From Cyanophora paradoxa CCMP329 (lineage: Eukaryota; Plantae; Glaucophyta): a stretch of DNA of 64,000 nt. Within the stretch, counting starts at the first letter, position 1; each line of letters begins with the position of its first letter. Of this stretch, positions 32,828-64,000 are shown piece by piece. Made by a program: the position numbers and the translations under genes. The notes under the pieces are model-generated. The model saw only the letters and a list, made by a program, of their open reading frames with translations. It did no database searches and was not told the origin of the DNA. The stretch covers positions 1 to 64,000 of the forward strand of contig QPMI01000117.1 of NCBI GenBank assembly GCA_004431415.1. Reading direction: 5' to 3'.

Positions 32828-35800
32828 CTATTTGCCCAGCATCGCCGCAAGCTTGCACGGGAGGCAGATGGAGGAGCATGGCGGCGAGGCGGGGCCGGGG
32901 ACACCTGCCGCGTTGACTGGCTGCACCGTGAACTCGTTCATCTGGCCCGTCGGCAGGTCGGTGAGCTGGTAGGAAGTCTGCGAGGAAGTGAAGTCAGCGA
33001 TGAACCCCGAATATTACTTATCTGAAGTACATGTGCAGAGCTAAAGTATTAAAGCACTACATGCAACCCTCGCATGCACACCTGGTTTCCGGGGACCCTG
33101 GCGACCGGCAGGCCGTTTTGGAGCACCATGTACTCGGCGGGGGGGCCGTTCACCGGCGGGTCCCACGTCAGAGTGCCCGTCGTGCTCGACAGAATGCCCT
33201 GGTACACGTGCACGCGCCGACGAGAGTTAGAATTCGGATTTAATCGACGCCGATCGCGAGTGCGCATGCCGGCACGCACCTGGTCAACGTTGGTGAGTTG
33301 AACGTTCGAGGGCGCGGCCGGGTTGGTCGAGCGCTGCGGGGCGGCCTTCTGGCCCTCCGTCGGGTCCGGCACAACGACCGGCGCCGAGCCAGCGGCGGGC
33401 GCGGGTCCGCTGGCGGTGACGGGTACGACGGAGACGACGGGGCTTGAGCCCGCCGGAAGGCTCCCGATTTCGTACTCAGTGGAGGTCGGCGGGAGCGTCG
33501 CGACCGTCGCGCCGTTGACAACGACGTTGTACCCCTGGAGGCGTCCGTTGCCGAAGGCCTTGCCCGTGGGACGGTTCCACTTCAGCGTGGCGCTGCTAGC
33601 GGAGCTGGGCGCAGCGGTGAGCTGCACCGCCGAGCTCGGGTCCGACGTCGACGTCGACGGAGCGCTGGCCGCCAGGGGAAACGAGGCAGTCCCCGAGGTC
33701 CCAGAGGGACCCATGGGCACGACCTGGAACGGGAGGGATCGCGTAAACATCGAGTAAATATAAACATTGATTTTAGTGCGACGTTAGCATCGGTAATTAA
33801 TAAATGCTTGCCTGGTACTTGGCGGAGGCGCCTGGAGAGGCGGCGGGGACGAGGACGGCAGTCTGGGATCCGGGAACCACGGAAATGACCTGCGAAAATT
33901 AAAGAACTCGTGCTCAGCATCGTGGATATATATATAATCCATTCATGACCATGATCAATCAATGCAACCGCACCTTGCCGTTCGCCATGACGGCGTACGT
34001 AGTGGCGGGTCCGGATGCAGGGTGGCTCCACGAGAGCGAGCTGCCACCAGTACCCCCGCGGCCGCCAGCTTGCGTGAGGCGCAAGTTGGAGGGGGCGTTC
34101 TCGTCGGGGGCCGGGCCAGCCACAACGCCCGGGAAGGAAACAGTGTGGCTAATATCGGCGAGAGTTGCGGCCGAAGGGGCGGCGTACAGAGCCGCGCCGC
34201 TGACGCGGGCCAAATCGGAGCCCGCGGGGGCGCGGGCGGGCGAGGTCGCGCGGCCGTACGAATCCGTGCGCGGGCTTGTCGGCGAGGCCGACAGCCCGTC
34301 CGAGCCGGACGCTGCGCCGCCATACCCGGCGCCGCTCAGAGCCGCAGCACCGACGCCGGCGTACGGGCCCAGCCCGAAGCCGGATCCGGAGCTGCCACTG
34401 GTGACCGGATTCGAGGCCGGCCCCACGGCGCCGTTCGACGCGACCGGCACAACCTGGTAGACGCTGCCCGGCTCGCCGCCCTTCGGCGAGACGTCGAACG
34501 AGGTCTGGCTCGCCGGGACGCTGCCGAGGACCTTGCCGTCGCCGATCACGGCGTAGCTCGCGGGACTGCCAACACGGGGACGACTCCACGAGAGGCGGCC
34601 CGACGAGCCGAAGAGACCCGGCGAGCTCGAGAGCTGCAGGTTCGACGGCGCCATGTCCGCGGGGCTCGCGGGGCCCGCGCCGGAGCCAGCTGGGTACGAG
34701 GCGAGCGGCACGCTGTTGCTGGCGGGGCCCGCGGGGCTGCCCGACGACGACAGGGGCACCACCGAGAAGTACGAATTGGCCGCGGCGCTCGCGCTGAGGC
34801 CCTTGGGGACGAACGTGTTGACACCCGACGGCGAGGCCTTGGCGGTGGCGACCTGGCGGCCGTCCTGCAGGACGCCGAAGCTGCCGCGCGAGTTCGCGTC
34901 AGCGCCCCGCGGCACCGCGAAATACGCGCGAATCGCGCATCACGCACCTCGGGACGCTGCCCAGGGTCGCAGGAGTGGTCCACGCCAGCAGCGCGCTCGG
35001 GCTGGCGCCCGAGCCCGCCGGCGTCGAGGTCAGCGCGATGCCGGAGCTCGGGTCGCTCGGGAGCGAGGCCGCGAGCGGCGACGAGGTCGGGCCCGCGACG
35101 CCGTTGCTGTCAAACGGCACCACCTGCAGGGCCGAGGCGCCGCCGTTGGTCGGCAGGCCCGAGACCGGGACGGAGGTCTGGTTGCCGGGGACCGACGCCA
35201 CGGGCTTGCCGTCCTTGAGGACGGTGTACGAGGCGGGCGAGCCCGAGGCCGGGCGCTTCCACGAGAGGGTGGCGGAGCCGGGGCCGCTGCCGTTGAAGCT
35301 GCTGAGCGCGAGGCTCGAGGGGCGAGCGGGCTGGGGGCGGGGGCGTCCACGCCAGAGCCGGCGATGCCCGCGCCGGGACCCGACGAGGGGCCGTACGGTC
35401 CGGCACCAGCGCCACTGTACTCCGGCCCGCCAGCGCCGCTGTAGGCGGGCGCAGGGCCCGAGCCGCTGGTGGCAGTGTTCGAGGCCGGCCCCACGGCGCC
35501 GTTCGACGCGACCGGCACAACCTGGTAGACGCTGCCCGGCTCGCCGCCCTTCGGCGAGACGTCGAACGAGGTCTGGCTCGCCGGGACGCTGCCGAGGACC
35601 TTGCCGTCGCCGATCACGGCGTAGCTCGCGGGGCGTCCCGCCCGAGGTGGGCTCCACGAGAGGCGGCCCGACGAGCCGAAGAGGCCCGGCGAGCTCGTGA
35701 GCTGCAGGTTCGACGGCGCCATGTCCGCGGGGCTCGCGGGGCCCGCGCCGGAGCCAGCTGGGTACGAGGCGAGCGGCACGCTGTTGCTGGCGGGGCCCGC

Positions 35801-53800: not shown

Positions 53801-56800
53801 GACGGGCGCGACGGAGAAGAGCGACTCGGCGACGGTGCTGCTCGGCAGGTTCTTCGCGGTGAACGAGTTGATGCCGGAGGAAGACGGCTTGACGACGCCG
53901 ATCTGGCGCCCATCTTGAAACACGGCATATCTTTCGAATCATCGGCGTCAGAATTCGCATAATGTGATATATGTATATCTGAACATAATCGGGTGGGGGA
54001 AATAAACCGATCGCTCACCCCGGAGGACCGCCAGCGCCAGGCTGGAGATCGCCTGCAGGTGTTGTCCAAGAAATCAGGGCGCTCGGGTTGCTCGGATTGC
54101 CGATGGGCGTCGACGTGAGGGCGATGCCGGTCGCCGGGTCGCGGGGCAGGATGGCCGCCAGTGGCGACGAAGGCGGGCCGGCGTAGCCCCTCTCGTCGAA
54201 CGGAACGACCTGGAGCGTTGAAGGGCTGCCGTTGGTCGGCAGGTCCGAGACCGCGATCGAGGTCTGACTGCCGGGCACGGAGCCGGCGGGAGTCCCGTTC
54301 TTGAGGATACTGTAGCTGTGCGGGGTGCCGTTCTGCGGTGGGCGCCAGGAGAGGGTCGCGGAGCCGGGACCGCTCCCGTTAGCGTTGAAGCTGCTGACCG
54401 CGAGGCTGGAAGGGGCGAGCGGGCTGGGGGCGGGGGCGTCCACGCCAGATCCGGCGATGCCAGCGCCAGGGCCGATGAGGGGCCGGTAGGGAGCAGGAAC
54501 TCCCATTCCGGGATCGCCCGACACGGGCAGCGAAGCAGGCCCGACGTTGCCGAAACGATCGATGGGCAGGACCTGGTAGACCTTGCCGCCGCGAGGCACA
54601 TCGGCCGAGGTCGCGCTGCCGGAGACGTTGCCAACCACCTGACCGTCGCTGAAAATCGCGTAATTCCCCGGGCTCCCACTGGCGGGGCTGTTCCAAGAAA
54701 GCTTCCCAGATCTAGACGAGCCGAACAGGCCGAAGCCGGAATCGCTGGTCAGCTGCAGGCCGGTCGGCGCCATCATCGGCTGGCTGGCATTGGGGCCCGC
54801 GGAGGAGCCAACTGGGTACCAAGATATGGGCGCCTTGCTGCTCGGGGCGCCGATGACCTCGCCGCTGGGCGAGATGGGCGCCACCGAGAACAGGGTCTCT
54901 TGGCCGGGGATGAGGCCGGGATTCCGGACGACAAAAGTGTTCACGTCACTGCGCGTCGAGTTCGGGGGCTTGACCGTGCCGATCTGCTGGCCGTCTCTGA
55001 AAATCGCGTAGCCGCCAATGCCGCCAGCTGTGCCAGTCGCGGGCGTGTTCCAGGCAAGGTGGCCGTTGGGGTTCGGGCCGGGGCCCATCGGCTGGGCTGT
55101 GAGTGTAATGCCATTGGGATCGCTAGAGAGCGCCGCGGAAAGCGTGTGGGACGGCGGTCCGGCGACGCCCTTGTCGTCGAAGGGAACGAGCTGCAGCTTG
55201 GTGCACTTCCCGTCGGTCGGCAGCCCGGGAAGCGGGTACGTTGTTCGGTTCCCTGGAACGCTGTCGACGGGCTTGCCGTCGCGGAGGACGGTGTAGCCCG
55301 CCGGCTGACCCGCCAACGGCGGCGTCCACGTCAGTCCACGTACGCTCGAGCCTTTCTCGTCAACCGCGGAAGCCGAGTTTGTGATGGCGAGGTTGGAAGG
55401 GGCGAGCGGGCTGGAGGCGGGCGCCTCGAGCTCGGAGCCCACGATCCCCGCGCCCGGCCCGCTCGGGTCGTAGGGGGTCCGCCACGCGCCGGCCCCGGCA
55501 CCCTTGCCACCGCCCGATCCGACGCCCTCGCCGCCGCCAGTACCGGCGCCCCCGCCTGAACCCGCGTACGGCTCGTAGGGCGCGGTTGCTGAACTCTTGG
55601 GGAAGATGCTGGGTATGCGTAGGGTGCCCTTAACGATCGCGGCGGTGATCCCAACGACGAGCAGGCCCGCGAAGCCGATGCCGAAGGCGAGCGGCAGGAT
55701 GTGCGACATCTGCCGACGAGAGTCATTTTTTAGATTGGCGGTTCAGAGATTGGGTCGCGATGGTCAAGAATATATACCTGGCTGTTGTTGCCGCCGTTTT
55801 CTTGCTGAGGAACTTCAGAAAGGCCTGCGGCAAACGCCGGCTGGCTTGAAGAGAAGAAGTTCGGAACAATTTGGCCGAGAGTAAACTGCGCAAGAGAAAA
55901 ATAAGATATTCGAAGCGCGAAAGGTTGCCTCTCAATCTCGTCCTCTCATGAAAATTTATACTTGCCGTGGTCTGCGCGCAAAAAGTGAATAAGCGAGAGA
56001 TAATTGGAAATTAAACCCCGAGGCTGTGCGCGCTTGCGAACTAAAAAGCGCAGCTTACCAGGTGCGTGCAGAACCCCCGAGCATACCAAACGCCCTGCGA
56101 ACGGTGCGTGAGTTGAAGGTGGCTCTCCGAGGATGCATGCGCTGAACCGCACGCGTACATCTTTTTGGAACAGGTCCCCCGCATCCGTCGCTTTCGGGTC
56201 GGGATTGTTTGCATCGCCGAGCTGGAGAGTTCGAATTCGTTATAAAATAGCGGTCGTCGAGCGTCAAGCTCACAGTGTACTATTGGCTAGAAATTTTACG
56301 CGTACCCACATGTTGATCTTCGGTTTAAGCTTCGTCTGACACGACTCCCAGCTTAGAGAGGTCTCGTTCCAGAAGATGAGGTACTGCTGCTCCGTCGGCA
56401 TCGTTTTTTGCGCTTCGGGGTAAGGGATTTCGATGATGATCGGCTTGTCGTCCGAGAGGCCTGTGATACGGAATCCGAGCACCTGCGCGCAGACCGCAGT
56501 CGTTCAGATCGCCTGTGAATTGGTCGGTATTGAATTGAAGGCGAACGCACCGAAATGTCAACGAAGCCACCCGTGATCTTGACATTACCCGTGGCCTCAC
56601 CCCCCTCGGGCCCCCTCCATACGGGCGGCCACGGCGATCTCTCCATGTTGAGGACCGACACGCCGAATCCTGCAGTCCGTGCCTTCAAATTCGGTACGAG
56701 TCCCTCGCTTTATACAATTAGAATCAAGGGCAGCCGCGCCCGCGCGCACCGTCGGTGCCGTTCTTTGGAACGAAGTCGCGAACCTCGAACGGGAGCTTCA

Positions 56801-59800
56801 CCAGCGCCGGGAACACGCCTTCGCCGCCTTTGGTTGTGTCGATGTTGTAATACACCCTGCAGATTGCAATTGGACTCAGCTTCCAATTCGTCGGCAGGCA
56901 CTTCAACAGATTGCGGAGCTTTCGCACCTTACATCAGTGAAGCAGACTGCTCGCACAAAGCACACGTGTTAAGATAAGATAATAACAATGGAATTAACTG
57001 CAAAAACTCAATTTCTTCACGCACTCTTTCCGGCGGTCTGTGACGATCAGGTTTTCGAGTGCAAATACAGTCGGGTCGAGTCAGCAAAGAAAATACAGGC
57101 AAGAGCGAAACGAAATGGGAGATGAAATAAAGCACCACAGCCGCTGCATCGGCAGCTGCATTACGCAAGCCGTCCGTGCAGCCTCGACAACTGCAGGAGG
57201 GAGAAAAGAATAAGATCCCCGCACGATCGTACGCGTGAACGTCAACGTTTGCGTGGAGGACGGTCGCACTTCGCGAGACGGCCTTGGGGCTGCTTGATAA
57301 GGGTGTTCAACAGGTTCGCGAGCGGATTGCTCGAGCCCGATCCCTCGGTTTGCCCAGTGAGACCTGTGCCAGCGGTGCCGACCCAGTCCGGACTGGCTAT
57401 CGCAGCTGACAATTCTTTGGTGGTCTATGAAATTCGCATAAGTAAACAGAACAAATGACGCAACACGGAGTGTAAGCACGAATGGCGCACTTGGTCCAAG
57501 TAGACGCTGAGGTCGAGGTCCACGAAATCGCACGGGTCTAATGCTGGCTTGCATCTCGACAGCTTCAGCATCAGCGTCGAGTTGAGGAACCTGTTGCGTT
57601 CATGCTCGGTCAATTGCAGATCTAGAACTCGCTCGATTGATATTTACACATATAATATATTATAACATTAATATTGAAAATGAAACGAATTATAATTTCT
57701 CTTCAAGGACGCACGAGCTGGAGGCATCCGCAAGAGCCACAATGGCTTTAAAAGTACTCTCCAGCTCCGGGTACGACTCCGTAAGGTTGCCGGCGTTTCG
57801 AGCAATGTTAGCGCGCTTTTCCGCGACGCTTGCGGCTAAGCAAGCGTCGTCAATTATTTGTTCCAAGTAAGGCGGTTTCTCTACACCTGAACGTCGTGAA
57901 GTCAGCAGCAATCATGATTTATATATAATCAACCAGATTAATATTCCTGTGGCTGGCGACCGTTCGCACCCTTGTCGCTCTTGATCTGGCCGGCTAAGGT
58001 AGAGACCACTTCGGCCTTCAACCCGATAAACTCCTTCTCCGTGATCGCCCCTGAATCGTAAAGCTGCTTGAGCTCTTCTGCGTAGCTGGTGTAGGTCGAG
58101 CTCAAGCTTTCGTTTCGCGGCGTATTCACAGTGATGTTCAGGACAACATCTGTGTGCAAATACAGAATCAGCCACAAAACGTCCGCCAAAAAGCTCTAAT
58201 CTCGATTCAAATTAAGTTTGCACCAGAGCAACCACAGGCGCTGCTAGAGCAGATGGTCGCTGTGAGCACAACCGCGCCAGCGGGGACAGCGCCGGCGGAG
58301 AGGCTCATGATACTGCTCTGCTCGGGCTTTGCAAGAACCCTATCTTTAAGCTGCAGGGTGCAAGGTCAGGGGAAAGGGTGGAAAGATTCATTCAATGGCC
58401 TTAATATTTAAATTTGCGTTCTCAAAGCGCGCGGACCTTGAGGGAGTAGAAGAGCGGCAGTGCCTTTTCCAGTTGGAAGGGCGGCCTCCAGTTGGAGCAG
58501 GTGACTGTGTACTTCGTCGCAAACAGTGTGCCCTCTGTCGGCGAAATCGTGCAGGCCCCGGACTCCGGAGCAGCGTTGCAGACCGGTACCGCCGGATCAA
58601 CGGGTTCCGTGGGCTTCGTGGGGTTCGTGGGGTTCGTGGGGTTCGTGGGATTCGTGGGGTTCGTGGGGCTCGAAGGGTCCGTGGGGCTCGAAGGGTCCGT
58701 GGGATTTGTGGGGTCCGTGGGATTCGTGGGATTTGTGGGATTTGTGGGATTTGTGGGATTTGTGGGGTCCGTGGGATTCGTGGGATTGGTGGGATCCGTG
58801 GGATCCGTGGGATCCGTGGGATTCGTGGGATTCGTGGGATTCGTGGGCGTTGTGGGTGGGACGGGGGCCTGAGAAGGAGACGTGCTTGTAGAGGGGTTCG
58901 TGGGGCCCGTGGTCGTTGTGGGCGGTACGGGGGTCGCGATCGGCCTCGGAGTCGGCCTCGGAGTGGGCGTCGCCGCAACCACGCCGCCGCAGACTTGCGC
59001 TAAGAAGTCTCTGCTGCTCTCGCGATATCCTCCTGCGCGAGGATTTTTTGAAATCAGGTTTGCGAGTCTTTCGAACATTATGCGCTGCCTCCAATTAAAC
59101 GCTCTGACCGAAGCGGTTCATGGCGCGGAGGAAGACGCGATACACGCGGTTTATCAAGCAGCTGGTCTTGAAAGGAGGGTCTAAAGAGTTGAGGTCGAAC
59201 GACGTCGTCGTGTTTGCGATTCCTTTAACCACGTGAGTCACTTGTTCTTGGTCGGCGATGTCGGTAAGATCGTTGTACTCCGGCGGATTAGTTCCGGGCT
59301 TTTGCACAGGAGCAGGAGAAGCCTTGAGCTACATAAGGGCGTCGTGTCAATTCAGGAGCAGAACAGGGGCATGCCTAGTAGAGTGAAACCCTCTAGATAT
59401 TTGTGTAATGAAGTCAGAGCTCACTCGGATCACGAGAATGTTGTAGCCGTACGGTGTGAGACGCTCAGTGTCTTTGGTGCCGTCCGGATTCGTCCACTTG
59501 ACCGTGTAATCGGTGCCAACGGGTTCTGGTTTTGGGGCTGTGAGGGTCTGTCAGTCAATTACACGCTTGCAAACTGTTTGATTGCTTGTACCGTGCCACC
59601 TCTGGAAGTCGAACCATGTTTTGGCGCGCTCCTCGGTAAAGACATAAGCGAATTGGATGCTGAATCCATCTTTGTATATGAGACTAGCCGCGTGCCGCTT
59701 AGTCCAGTCAAACCAGAGAGTGAGCATATCGTTGGCGGTGTTGTTGTATCCAATTGCAGCTTTCGCTGGATCGAGTTTGATTGTATTTATGAGGTTAGGT

Positions 59801-62800
59801 AGGATCTGGGCTGGGTCGTGGGGGTCCAAGCCCAGTCCAACCTGCGCTTTCGCATTGTGGAATCCCTGCTGGCCTTCGTCGTGGACGAGCCTGAGCGAGT
59901 CTCGTGATCAACATGTGCATGCAATTATTGTGATTGACAGGTGTCGCAGCAAAGGGTTATATTACGCATGCATACCCAACGAAGCAGCGTTCTGAGGACG
60001 TTTCAGGAGAAACAGAACGAAAGAAAAAACAACTGCAGGATCAAGAAGCTTTGACTGCGTACCGAACAGGAGGCCTTTAGCTCCGATGGAAGCGATGGTG
60101 CCCTCACCGGCGGCCGCCCCCACGTTGTTTTCGTTGTTTGGTTGCCTGTATATCTTGTTCTTGGTAGCTGGGGACGATCGCGAATGGCGTAAGAAATGTG
60201 GCGTGTGCGCAGCCTAAAGGTATCGACAACGAAAAGTCGAATCCACACCGTGCATCTCTGCATTCATAAGTGAGAATCGTCATGATCAGCGAGATCGAGT
60301 AATTAATCAGGAAAATCAATTATAAAAAATACCCCTTGTTCGCGGCCTTGTCGGCTTTTGGTGACTTGAGCCCCAATCCACATAATTTGTCGCAAAATTA
60401 TTGCCTTCGAGGGTATAGGAGGAGTCGACCGTTGTCGATCCGACGTCATGCGATTGTCTGCAGCAGGTCAGCGCAACATTCGGTAGAACACATTAATATT
60501 TACGAAAAACAAACCGTGATGGGCCCCAGTGTATATATCTGGGATCGCCGCGATCCAGGCCCTTTGGAATTTGCGCGGGGTCTTCAATGCCCGCCAAAGT
60601 GCCTGGTAATCGGCGCGGCAGGGTATCAGTCATGCAACTTCAGCGAACCCGGCATCATGCTTTAAGCTGTGTGCCTGTTGTGCTCTGCTGACACTTACAC
60701 AATATGGGACGCTCCCTTGGTGAAAGACACTGCTTACATGGGTAATGGGTACATAAGGGGGCCATTTTTCACTAGTGCACTTAAGGGCGAGGCAGCGGGG
60801 CTAGGCCACGATGCGAGCGGGCCATCTAGGGCCCGCATCTAGGGCCACGATGCCAGAGGTTCCGCATGCCGCAGTGCGCATATATATGGGACGCGCACCC
60901 CTCTCGGCAGATTCCACCCTCGTCTCTATTGTCTCTGCAGCTGCCCTCTCGCGATCGCAGACACATGTTCGAATTCTGAGGGGTGAACACTTAAGGGCCT
61001 CTGGACATAGCCGATCCCCTCCCTCTTGCCGTACGCGTACGCGTACCCCGGGCCGATTAATCTTCTGCGGAATGAATCGAAGCTAGCATATAGCTATATA
61101 TACCTATAGGATACCACATGCCGGGCTCGCACCTTTCTGCTGGTCGATGTCGGGGTCGATTTGCCGCATGTAGTAGGAAACTGGAGGTGTCGGGTTTAGT
61201 TTTGTTTTTAGTAGAGCGGGGGAGGGGGGTGGAAGAGGGGGAAGGGGGGAAGGGGGCCGAAAGGGGGGGCCGGAAAGGAGGGGGGGGGAAAGGGGGGTGG
61301 GGGGGTGGGGGTGGGAATGGCCAGTCGCTTCTGAAGTTCTGTGGGAGGTCCCCACATATGCATATATCCTATGATATACGCGTATATATATACGTACCTG
61401 GGTTATATGAGGATCGATCTACATCATAGTCGGCTCTGTGCGCCGCGGCGAGACCAGCACACGTGAGTCGAAACGCTTAACATTCGTACGATGCAAGAGA
61501 GCGCGTCCGGGGCTCCTGTATAGCTAGAGCTGATCTTAATAAAATATGATTTCGATTAAAACAGCTCACATCACAGTGTAATCGATGTAGATCTCGAAGT
61601 TTTCACCGTCCTCGCGAATAAAGTACCTGGGCGCGCATGTAAGTCATTTGCATGCCGTTTTGTGTTTCCAGAATTAAAAATGTACGTGTGAGTGTGTGTC
61701 AAGCGGAGGGAAGCGTCATTCAACGGATCGAGGGGATCTAGGCTTGGGATGACATGGACCACTGTAATTCCTGAAGGCGGCAACAGAAAAGTCATCACGC
61801 GCTACAAGAATACCACGAATCATAAATTTACCGTCGTCCTCAACAAGAGTCTTGTTGATGCCGATATTCGAAAATTTTTTCCCGACCTTCGCATCAATGC
61901 CAGCTGCATTCACAAAAAGAAATCGATTCCCATGTGGGGTTTGAGAATCTCTCGAAGTAGTGCCCCAGCCTGCGATCGCGAGATGAATACGTGAGAAGAG
62001 CACCAGCTTCAGCAGAGCTGGGCCACATTGCTACGTATGAGGATTAGCAACCTGATTGGCGTTGGCAATCAGGCCCGAAAAATAAGGCCTGCTTTCGCGC
62101 TGCCCTGCATGCAGCAACCTAATTATAACCTAACCATACCTACAGCTGTAGCCTTGAAAGCAACTTTGCATCCAATGCCACATGCACTCATATTTATGCT
62201 TCCTAGCTAAAGTGGCCTCTTGATAAAAGAGATTAATTGCCTCACCTTCAATCGGAAATCCTTGAGTCTGACACAAATACGCGTGTCAGTTCCCATACTA
62301 CGGTAATGCACGGCCAGATATACGTCAAATAAGTTTGCGCACAATGAAATCCTTTTTATTTAAATAAATAGAAATCGTTTGTAATGATCAGTTGACGGAT
62401 GCAGCGAATGGACATGGTTAGAAATCAATTGAAGACGCACGCCACAGTAGGCCATTTGCCTATTGAACCCACGAGCGCAGGTCACAGAATTACTATAAGT
62501 ACACGATAAAATTCTCCTTGCTTAGGTAAATATATTGTAGCTGCACCTTCCGGTCCTGCAGCCTTTTCCCGTTTTCGAGCAAGTCCCGTCCTCTTGGGGA
62601 GGAGTCGCCTCAATGTAGTCATCGTACTCTGCGGCAAATGGAAATATGCAAAAGCGCAGGCATTGCGCAGCCATGGCCCTTTTCGTACCTGGCCACGTGT
62701 TCCACTGTGTGTCAGGCGAATAGAGTGAGTAATGCAGAAGGATCACAAAATTCAAGTGCATAAACTGCATTTCGCACTCCGTCCTTGTCAATATCGACGA

Positions 62801-63872
62801 AGAGTCCGTGGCCGTAAAAGCGTCGAAGGGTATGGCCAAGCGGAAAGCCGTCAGGGATCGGCCCGAAAGTTCCGAGGGCGCCTGTGTATGAGTCGATGGC
62901 GGTCAGGATGTGCCTCCCAACGACGAGGTAGTCCGTTGCATCGAAAGCGCGCTGCTGCACCCCATCGTAAAGCCTCCACGGGAGGGGGTGCGCGCCGCGC
63001 TCTGGCAAGGTGACGCCTGCGCGGTTTCATTAATATTCGCATTGCAATTGTGTAAAGCTCGCGGACCCATGTTGCCGCGAATCTCAAAAAGCGGCCTGTA
63101 CTCACTGCCGCGCACGTTGGTGCAGACTCTGCACGCAAGTGTCGTGGGCAAATTGCGCGCGCGCGCGTCCAAATCGGAGCAGATACGCATACTTCTCCAC
63201 AGTACCCCAAGCCTGATCCATTGCGAGTGGTCGATACTGCTTGTCCCAGGGAGCGTACAAGTCGCTGTTTGGGTTCGGCGATGGGAAAGGGTACGAGTAC
63301 TGGAGCTCTCTGCGGTCATTGTCACGCGTACGAAAACATCCGAATCAAAAAGTCGAACGAAGTCCGCAAAAAAATTGGCTACCCGTTCGAATGACCTAGT
63401 AGATATCGGAAATCGACATAAGCGTCGAATTTGCACGTAATTAAAAAAACCAAATCGAGCACCTAACCAGCGTGGATACTGGCGCACGCGCACAGGGGTC
63501 GACGTCAGCGCTTCGGCGTAAAGAGTGTTCGCATTTTCCTTCTAAAAAATGGTTACCATGCCACCTCCGGCCTCCTTTCCCTGAAGGGAGGAGGGAGGGA
63601 GATGAGACATGAAAGTTAGAATTCCATGGGACTCATATCTTGCTTACCGAATACCCCCCAGCTTTCGGAAGCAGCTTCCCGGATCCCAGCATGTACGTCT
63701 CTGTGTGCTTGCTGAGGCCCGTGAGCCGTTGGACCTCGTAAGGTGAGCGGAAACCAAGGTAATGATTGCGGCCGTTCTCGAGCTGCTCAATTCCGGTCAC
63801 GGCGGGTGTTAAACTTCCAACAGCGGCAGGCGAGAAGAGTTGATTCCACGATGGATCAAAGAGAGCAGTCAT
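32828..63872 (-). CDS. Giant single-pass REJ-GAIN/GPS receptor-like protein with ~60 FN3-like repeats C-terminal to the TM (estimated >8,000 aa; 5' end probably outside the window)
   Basis: I traced a phase-consistent exon chain from ~60.2 kb to the stop TAG at 32830-32828 (apart from three 1-nt gaps in the array). Order: FN3 (YTVKWTNP...YGYNILV...VYRVFLRAMNRFG, 59540-59115), PT repeats, REJ module, helical GAIN-A-like region, GAIN-B (DISVLGFRITGLSDDKPIIIEIP...FWNETSLSWESC...GFCTHL|TT|FTLG), TM (55700-55632), FN3 array. Exon-like segments continue from 60.2 to 63.9 kb, but their frames are less certain. Confidence 0.85.
33960..48600 (-). repeat. Homogenised coding tandem array of 12 full units plus a terminal partial unit; short 1078 bp (1002 exon + 76 intron) and long 1219 bp (1143 + 76); each unit encodes 3 FN3-like domains
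   Basis: Equivalent anchor positions are 48542, 47464, 46245, 45167, 43948, 42870, 41793, 40574, 39497, 38278, 37200, 35983 and 34915. The conserved phase-2 intron reads ccgag|GTGCGC...gctgac...cggcAG|cttcggc. Confidence 0.95.
48600..55410 (-). repeat. Diverged 5' units of the same FN3 super-repeat (about 6-7 units)
   Basis: Same three-domain C-A-B order and the same phase-2 intron position (~49650, 50740, 51840, 52910, 54017), but with many substitutions and unique linkers. Confidence 0.9.
55632..55700 (-). other. Single transmembrane helix of the giant protein
   Basis: ILPLAFGIGFAGLLVVGITAAIV is followed by K/R residues (KGTLRIPSIFPK). The Met at 55709 follows a splice acceptor and an in-frame upstream exon (55885-55778), so it is internal rather than a start. 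Confidence 0.85.
55860..56680 (-). other. GAIN subdomain B with GPS autoproteolysis motif
   Basis: Spliced: ...PIIIEIPYPEAQKTMPTEQQYLIFWNETSLSWESCQTKLKPKINMW|LGDANNPDPKATDAGDLFQKD|GVWYARGFCTHL|TT|FTLGQIVPN. This gives the W-x6-W-x2-C...C-x-H-L/T-x-F pattern about 40 aa before the TM. Confidence 0.82.
58120..58585 (-). other. REJ (receptor for egg jelly)-type module
   Basis: PESGACTISPTEGTLFATKYTVTCSNW...LPLFYSLK|LKDRVLAK...GAVVLTATICSSSACGCS|DVVLNITV matches the P-x-x-G-x-C-x-I-x-P-x-x-G...T-x-F/Y-x-x-x-C-x-x-W...PL-x-Y pattern I recall from polycystin-1-family REJ regions. Confidence 0.75.
58600..58980 (-). repeat. Coding 9-bp minisatellite encoding a (PTN/PTD)n Pro-Thr stalk
   Basis: gggattcgt/ggggttcgt/gggatccgt tandem units on the plus strand; the minus-strand translation is PTNPTNPTDP... 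Confidence 0.92.
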
Positions 63873-64000
63873 CTAAGCAGTCATCAAAGAGAGACATCGC
63901 CGATTGATTCTCACGATCATGATTACCGAGAAGCGCCCTAAGGTTTCGAAACGAAGTGAGACCTCGATCGCGACAGGCATATATATTTCAAGTTTTTAAA

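Follow-up and report, generated by a model that had tools for sequence, protein, structure and literature searches.

A candidate six-nucleotide exon encoding the predicted cleavage-site threonine of a GPS-like motif in the glaucophyte Cyanophora paradoxa

Some membrane proteins carry, close to the membrane, a site at which the chain cuts itself after a His-Leu pair that is followed by Thr or Ser, and the two fragments remain associated. The GPS motif that surrounds such a site is defined as about 50 residues with conserved tryptophans and two to four disulfide-forming cysteines (PMC9672506). In the family of polycystin-1 and the sea-urchin REJ proteins the motif is found downstream of a REJ region and before the first of 11 membrane helices, and in G-protein-coupled receptors (GPCRs) of the adhesion class it belongs to the GAIN domain in front of a seven-transmembrane (7TM) domain. 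The GAIN fold is made up of a helical subdomain A and a β-sandwich B, the last strand of which follows the cut. Splicing alters the extracellular region of adhesion GPCRs in animals (e.g., PMC6954182, PMC10830413). On the side of RNA processing, micro-exons lying between very short introns in C. elegans need no special factor (the PRP-40 helper; PMC8378409). None of the three elements (micro-exon, GC-AG intron, H-L/T site) is new by itself, and a full-text search of the literature turned up no paper on a micro-exon with the GPS nucleophile in it. Here, we describe a candidate for such an exon in a stretch of 64,000 nucleotides (nt) from Cyanophora paradoxa CCMP329 (contig QPMI01000117.1, positions 1 to 64,000), referred to as the window. 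Six bases, ACCACG, at 55966..55971 would encode the two threonines that follow His-Leu in a GPS-like motif, within a many-exon gene for a predicted one-pass membrane protein. The gene lies on the minus strand, as do all features described below.

An outline of the exons around the predicted cleavage site is as follows. Exon M (56059..56094, 36 nt) begins after the acceptor cgcAG, encodes G-V-W-Y-A-R-G-F-C-T-H-L and ends at the donor GTAAGC; the predicted scissile bond coincides with its exact end. It is followed by an intron of 87 nt (55972..56058; GTAAGC...GCGCAG), in which a branch-like motif, CTTAT, stands 19 nt before the AG. Then comes the candidate micro-exon, ACCACG, which encodes Thr-Thr; its acceptor side reads tttttgcgcgcAG and its donor is GCAAGT. 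A GC-AG intron of 80 nt (55886..55965; GCAAGT...GCGCAG), again with CTTAT, here 17 nt before the AG, leads to exon N (55778..55885, 108 nt), which starts with TTTACT... after cttgcgcAG, reads F-T-L-G-Q-I-V-P-N-F-F and closes at the donor GTATAT. Exon N is predicted to form the last β-strand and the stalk. The lengths of the three exons, 36, 6 and 108 nt, are each divisible by three, all junctions are in phase 0, and a local frame check found the joined frame over exon M, the micro-exon and exon N free of stops. Omission of the six bases keeps the frame and gives CTHL-FTLG. A GT at 55961, if used as the donor in place of the GC, makes a 10-nt exon, shifts the frame and meets a stop some 38 codons on, and retention of either flanking intron leads to stops, in the case of the 87-nt upstream intron after five codons. 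An initial annotation of this DNA, made by reading the letters, had drawn the same map (56094-56059, 55971-55966 and a start at 55885), which can be read directly on the minus strand. Its phase-0 junctions agree with the exon lengths and with the open joined frame; its statement that the GC donor is needed is borne out by the fate of the GT at 55961; and its in-frame skipping product is the one that the frame check returns.

An assembly error at the micro-exon locus is excluded, because an independent DNA run of 2012 yields a 1305-nt contig identical to 55083-56387. The same run holds two to five further contigs of 80-90% likeness on exons K, L and F (56551-56667, 56306-56482 and 57268-57394). 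They are absent from exons M and N and from the micro-exon, and their divergence begins at the exon edges, a pattern to be expected of several paralogues whose introns cannot be aligned.

Are the six bases coding? Evidence on this question comes from paralogues. A search with exon L against all protein representatives retrieved two near-identical EukProt models of C. paradoxa, P0006 and P0009 (tig00021532_g22184 and g22185), which read Y-Y-A-R-G-R-C-T-H-L-T-T-F-T-V-G-E-I-E-L contiguously. When residues 1-200 of P0006 were compared with the window by local tblastn, they proved colinear on exons K, L, M and N and on the exon with the membrane helix. Residues 94-105 (G-T-Y-Y-A-R-G-R-C-T-H-L) fall on exon M, ending at 56059, and the match resumes with residue 108 (F-T-V-G-E-I-E-L) at 55885. 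The two residues left between them, T106 and T107, are the sole ones in P0006 that ordinary exons of the window do not cover, and ACCACG encodes exactly these, at an overall protein identity to the paralogues of about 50%. The initial annotation had taken the two Thr codons to be coding, and the CTHL-TT-FTVG of both paralogues, with precisely this TT, speaks for it. These paralogue models come from BRAKER1/AUGUSTUS and are not transcripts (PMC6704402), so that they tell what the paralogue DNA can encode and not what is spliced.

The annotation of this family, which we call the REJ/GPS-FN3 family, is systematically broken around the GPS region. The models P0006 and P0009 have their start midway through the GAIN-like region, whereas another model, P0001, begins at the helix exon. 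In P0006 and P0009, residues ~149-174 read through an intron after ...N-N-S-Q, at a place that aligns with a 68-nt intron of the window (55710-55777). Word searches with the helix exon (563 aa and 120 aa) returned one EukProt fragment, P0001, and nothing else, and a region search with P0006 returned P0006 itself only; the nearest proteins to the gene are all EukProt models of C. paradoxa. Three other candidates were set aside: P0010, which is 36 aa long and was clustered with P0006, is unrelated, as is the contig reached through it, and P0004 and P0005 are repeat proteins with unrelated Pfam matches and not relatives.

A second line of evidence is how rarely such an element arises by chance. 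In the real 173-nt interval between exons M and N, a single in-frame micro-exon candidate, ACCACG, allows a sub-intron of at least 55 nt on either side. Among simulated intervals, 83% hold some in-frame candidate of 3-30 nt; a 6-nt candidate behind YAG with Ser or Thr first occurs in 2.3%, and Thr-Thr between AG and GY with both sub-introns of at least 55 nt in 0.06% (about 6 per 10,000; 6e-4). The intron sizes point the same way. Between 59035 and 54019, 16 introns were modelled, with sizes of 64-124 nt and a median of 79.5, and the mean intron of the published C. paradoxa genome is 86 bp (PMC6704402). The micro-exon divides the interval into an 87-nt and an 80-nt intron; its absence would leave a single one of 173 nt, which exceeds every one of the 16 modelled. 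The splice signals are likewise in place, with a YAG acceptor, a GCAAGT donor and introns of workable length on both sides. Each of the two flanking introns has a T-rich tract, a GCGCAG end and CTTAT 17-19 nt upstream, and CT[GT]AY occurs in seven other introns of the gene. A "twin intron" origin, in which the downstream intron would be a copy of the upstream one, was considered and rejected, as the two show no similarity above that of shuffles. Judged from paralogue fit, rarity by chance, intron sizes and splice signals, and from other tiny exons (13 and 19 nt) that the gene appears to have, ACCACG is quite probably a spliced coding exon.

The donor of this exon departs from the usual GT. The GC donor at 55965 shows no sign of weakness, its consensus being otherwise perfect, and it has a counterpart in the same gene. 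A second GC-AG intron (33724..33811, 88 nt, donor GCAAGC) was recognised in the fibronectin-III tail by homology of the FN3 repeats: the junction K-Y-Q/V-V-P-M-G at 33811-33724 restores the motif V-Y-Q-V-L-P-I of uninterrupted units, and there is no GT nearby. GC donors thus account for 2 of 24 in this gene, both of the GCAAG type.

How might the spliceosome deal with an exon of six bases? Intron definition would be expected here because the introns are about 80 nt long. One of the two short introns would fall at the predicted scissile bond and the other two codons beyond it, leaving Thr-Thr isolated on its own 6-nt exon. Each of these introns of 80-87 nt would be recognised separately through intron definition, and constitutive inclusion of the micro-exon would follow, with the perfect AAGT at +3 to +6 compensating for the GC of the donor. 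The mature protein would then read C-T-H-L-T-T-F-T-L-G, i.e., H-L/T-x-F, and the first Thr of ACCACG would be the nucleophile of the H-L/T site. Like the micro-exons between short introns in C. elegans, this exon is far below the size that exon definition can handle and is flanked by short introns (PMC8378409). Unlike them, it stands, at 6 nt, at the extreme low end, and the splicing mode in Cyanophora is proposed from intron size.

Whether the motif interrupted in this way belongs to GPS has to be judged from several features together. Read by eye, it comprises F-W, S-W, S-C and F-C-T-H-L, i.e., two tryptophans and two cysteines. The usual first and third cysteines are absent, and they are the pair that would bond each other, the partner of the absent C-x-F-W cysteine being absent as well. 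The F-W ... S-W-x-S-C part lies on exon L (56306..56482, 177 nt, phase 0 at both ends), which was defined by reading frame and splice sites and shows 58% identity to P0006 residues 32-78 and 74% to P0003. Between exons L and M a further exon, M0 (56159..56221, 63 nt; acceptor ctccAG, donor GTACGC), is probably real inside an apparent intron of 211 nt, although the initial annotation does not have it. It is the sole in-frame AG...GT exon in that interval, in which the introns become 84 and 64 nt, and its end, D-L-F-Q-K-D, resembles the A-I-F-F-K-D that precedes G-T-Y-Y-A-R-G in P0006. The coordinates of the micro-exon are unaffected by M0, and the GPS-like loop becomes longer than usual once it is included. 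The motif ends at the cleavage site as C-T-H-L, T-T and F-T-L-G, with H-L followed by Thr, provided that the 6-nt exon is spliced in. From the predicted cut it is 38 residues to the sole membrane helix, I-L-P-L-A-F-G-I-G. Nearest neighbours by a protein language model were clusters of ZU5, GPS and FIIND, all self-cleaving domains, with scores of 0.77-0.86, below 0.9, and these serve as leads only. The GPS label rests on the motif, its position and the REJ match upstream. As for the label given in the initial annotation, these three features support it in part, and the Pfam GPS profile does not match. The region is GPS-like, membership in GPS is probable, and cleavage is putative.

The window is very GC-rich, and the gene that holds the motif is cut roughly every 100 nt by short, AT-richer introns; across all 17 modelled exons its frame is open, with no stop or frameshift. 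The product is best explained as a one-pass membrane protein with a REJ-type region, a GPS-like motif just outside the helix and a long fibronectin-III chain. The REJ match lies on the 3′ part of a large exon (58437..58598; Pfam PF02010, E 5.8e-9, 35.5 bits against a cut-off of 25 bits) and covers, on that exon, only profile positions 310-351 of 452. Directly upstream of the REJ-matching part, in the same exon, 58620-58900 encodes a long mucin-like repeat of Pro, Thr and Asn/Asp (P-T-N-P-T-D...). On the other side of the motif, after exon N and the 68-nt intron, a large exon of 1691 nt (54019..55709, 563 residues) opens with the only membrane helix and continues with K/R residues and then with a linker rich in Gly, after which the fibronectin-III units start. 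It matches Pfam fn3 (E 5.6e-9) and is 72% identical to the paralogue model P0001. The remainder of the gene down to ~32800 consists of repeat units. A PLAT domain, or 11 membrane helices with a channel-like end, was looked for in the 563-residue exon after the single helix, which gives fn3-type matches only.

Other details of the gene may be added here. The tiny exons of 13 nt (57025-57037) and 19 nt (56928-56946) are required for an open frame between exons G and J; they have GTGCG donors and CAG acceptors, and their flanking introns measure 71-98 nt. The exon at 57971-58147, which reads ...E-E-L-K-Q-L-Y-D-S-G-A-I-T-E-K-E-F-I-G-L-K..., matches Pfam SHOCT near the threshold (E 1e-5, 25.5 bits, cut-off 27); such a match would not be expected in an extracellular region of helices, and it probably reflects the likeness of a helix by chance. 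At the upstream end of the gene region, 59000-64000 has a much lower GC content (~0.51-0.55) and short open segments only.

The protein can be compared with more than one known system. It resembles the polycystin-1 and sea-urchin REJ family in having a REJ match upstream, Trp and Cys residues in the motif and, with the micro-exon, C-x-H-L-T-x-F before the first helix (PMC9672506). In contrast to that family it has one helix and not 11, no channel part, and a long fibronectin-III chain after the helix; its motif has two cysteines and not four, the Pfam GPS profile fails on it, and its cleavage is putative. With the GAIN domain of adhesion GPCRs it shares a membrane-adjacent H-L/T site, self-cleaving there and predicted to be so in Cyanophora, but it has no 7TM domain and no alternative isoform has been documented for it. 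A third comparison is with PKDREJ and PKD1L1, whose GPS is not cleaved. A form of the Cyanophora protein from which the micro-exon had been skipped, C-T-H-L-F, would likewise lose the tripeptide (PMC9672506), whereas in those two proteins the loss is encoded by the gene and not made by splicing.

Taken as a whole, a constitutively spliced-in micro-exon in a one-pass REJ/GPS-like/FN3 gene is the best overall explanation, and we consider it likely. Several observations weigh against it. Pfam GPS (PF01825) gives no match at E up to 10, either with single exons or with P0006:1-200, in which the motif is contiguous. Among structures in the PDB, a sequence search found nothing relevant and a profile search came back empty. 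An AlphaFold2 model of P0006:1-130 from an alignment of six rows reached a predicted local distance difference test (pLDDT) score of 46 with strands only, and on so poor a model a Foldseek comparison with the PDB is meaningless. The support for TT comes from gene models, one of which, P0006, itself runs on through an intron close by. Words from the gene turn up in none of the 17 runs guessed to be RNA, and three of these runs, when aligned at 80% likeness, gave low-complexity matches only, at 55519-55557; inclusion of the micro-exon is not seen in the RNA runs, and the gene may be silent. Finally, six nucleotides are a tight space for simultaneous binding at the two splice sites, and some skipping is conceivable.

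The absence from the RNA runs leads to the alternative of a silent or decaying copy of the family, which would have inherited its exon structure but would not be expressed, so that the question of splicing would be moot. Beyond the zero gene words in all guessed-RNA runs and the lack, at 80% likeness, of any match other than low complexity, it can be noted that no EukProt gene model covers exon L at 100%. Yet the 17 modelled exons keep the frame open throughout, free of stops and frameshifts; besides, the runs, whose kinds were guessed, are probably from vegetative cultures only, and contigs drop rare transcripts. We regard a silent copy as unlikely.

A different alternative does away with the micro-exon: a single GT-AG intron of 173 nt would join C-T-H-L directly to F-T-L-G, the GPS would be degenerate and uncleavable, and ACCACG would be a chance sequence or a relic. 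No RNA shows the six bases spliced in, some in-frame candidate is common in random intervals, as the simulations showed, and the failure of Pfam GPS to recognise the region would suit a degenerate motif. But ACCACG encodes precisely the TT of the paralogues despite a protein identity of about 50%, a coincidence with the chance of 6e-4 given above; the single intron would exceed all 16 that were modelled; the interval has its acceptor tract, a branch-like motif and the AAGT donor; and without TT the H-L-T-x-F register is lost. This makes the single long intron distinctly improbable.

The alternative that survives least well is the one put forward in the initial annotation, which took the GC donor and the tiny exon for a splice switch with condition-dependent inclusion or skipping, so that either a cleavable H-L/T form or a full-length, uncleavable C-T-H-L-F-T-L-G form would be made. 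Skipping is indeed in frame, the exon has an extremely small size and a GC donor instead of GT, and an uncleaved form could function, as uncleaved GPS variants lacking the tripeptide occur naturally in PKDREJ and PKD1L1 (PMC9672506); but GC donors are normal in this gene, as the second GC-AG intron shows, and this one is otherwise of perfect consensus, the flanking introns have standard lengths and signals, exons L, M0, M and N (177, 63, 36 and 108 nt) are equally phase-0 symmetric, which leaves nothing special in in-frame skippability, no isoform of either kind was seen in RNA runs that lack the gene, and short-intron systems usually fail by retention, which here leads to stops, and not by skipping, so that a switch is very improbable. 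The typical failure of intron definition is described as intron retention and not exon skipping (PMC8378409), and its application to Cyanophora is our extension of that principle. We are dealing with a real and tidy feature of gene structure, in which the micro-exon is most likely constitutive.

If it is spliced as predicted, this micro-exon would rank with the smallest exons that code for something of clear function, namely the nucleophile of a self-cleaving motif. Its immediate use lies in annotation: standard gene prediction in this intron-crowded genome breaks such genes right here, the paralogue models starting or stopping around the micro-exon, and the micro-exon provides a simple rule, open to checking, by which all of the REJ/GPS-FN3 family in Cyanophora could be annotated anew. 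Were conditional skipping to be true after all, RNA splicing in the alga would decide if a polycystin-like protein of the cell surface is able to cleave itself, which would be new biology, and if the micro-exon were kept across the whole paralogue family and skipped conditionally, there would be family-wide splicing control of GAIN autoproteolysis. More generally, an H-L/T-type site, predicted as it is, would be placed in a glaucophyte, and this would bear on the age of GAIN-type autoproteolysis.

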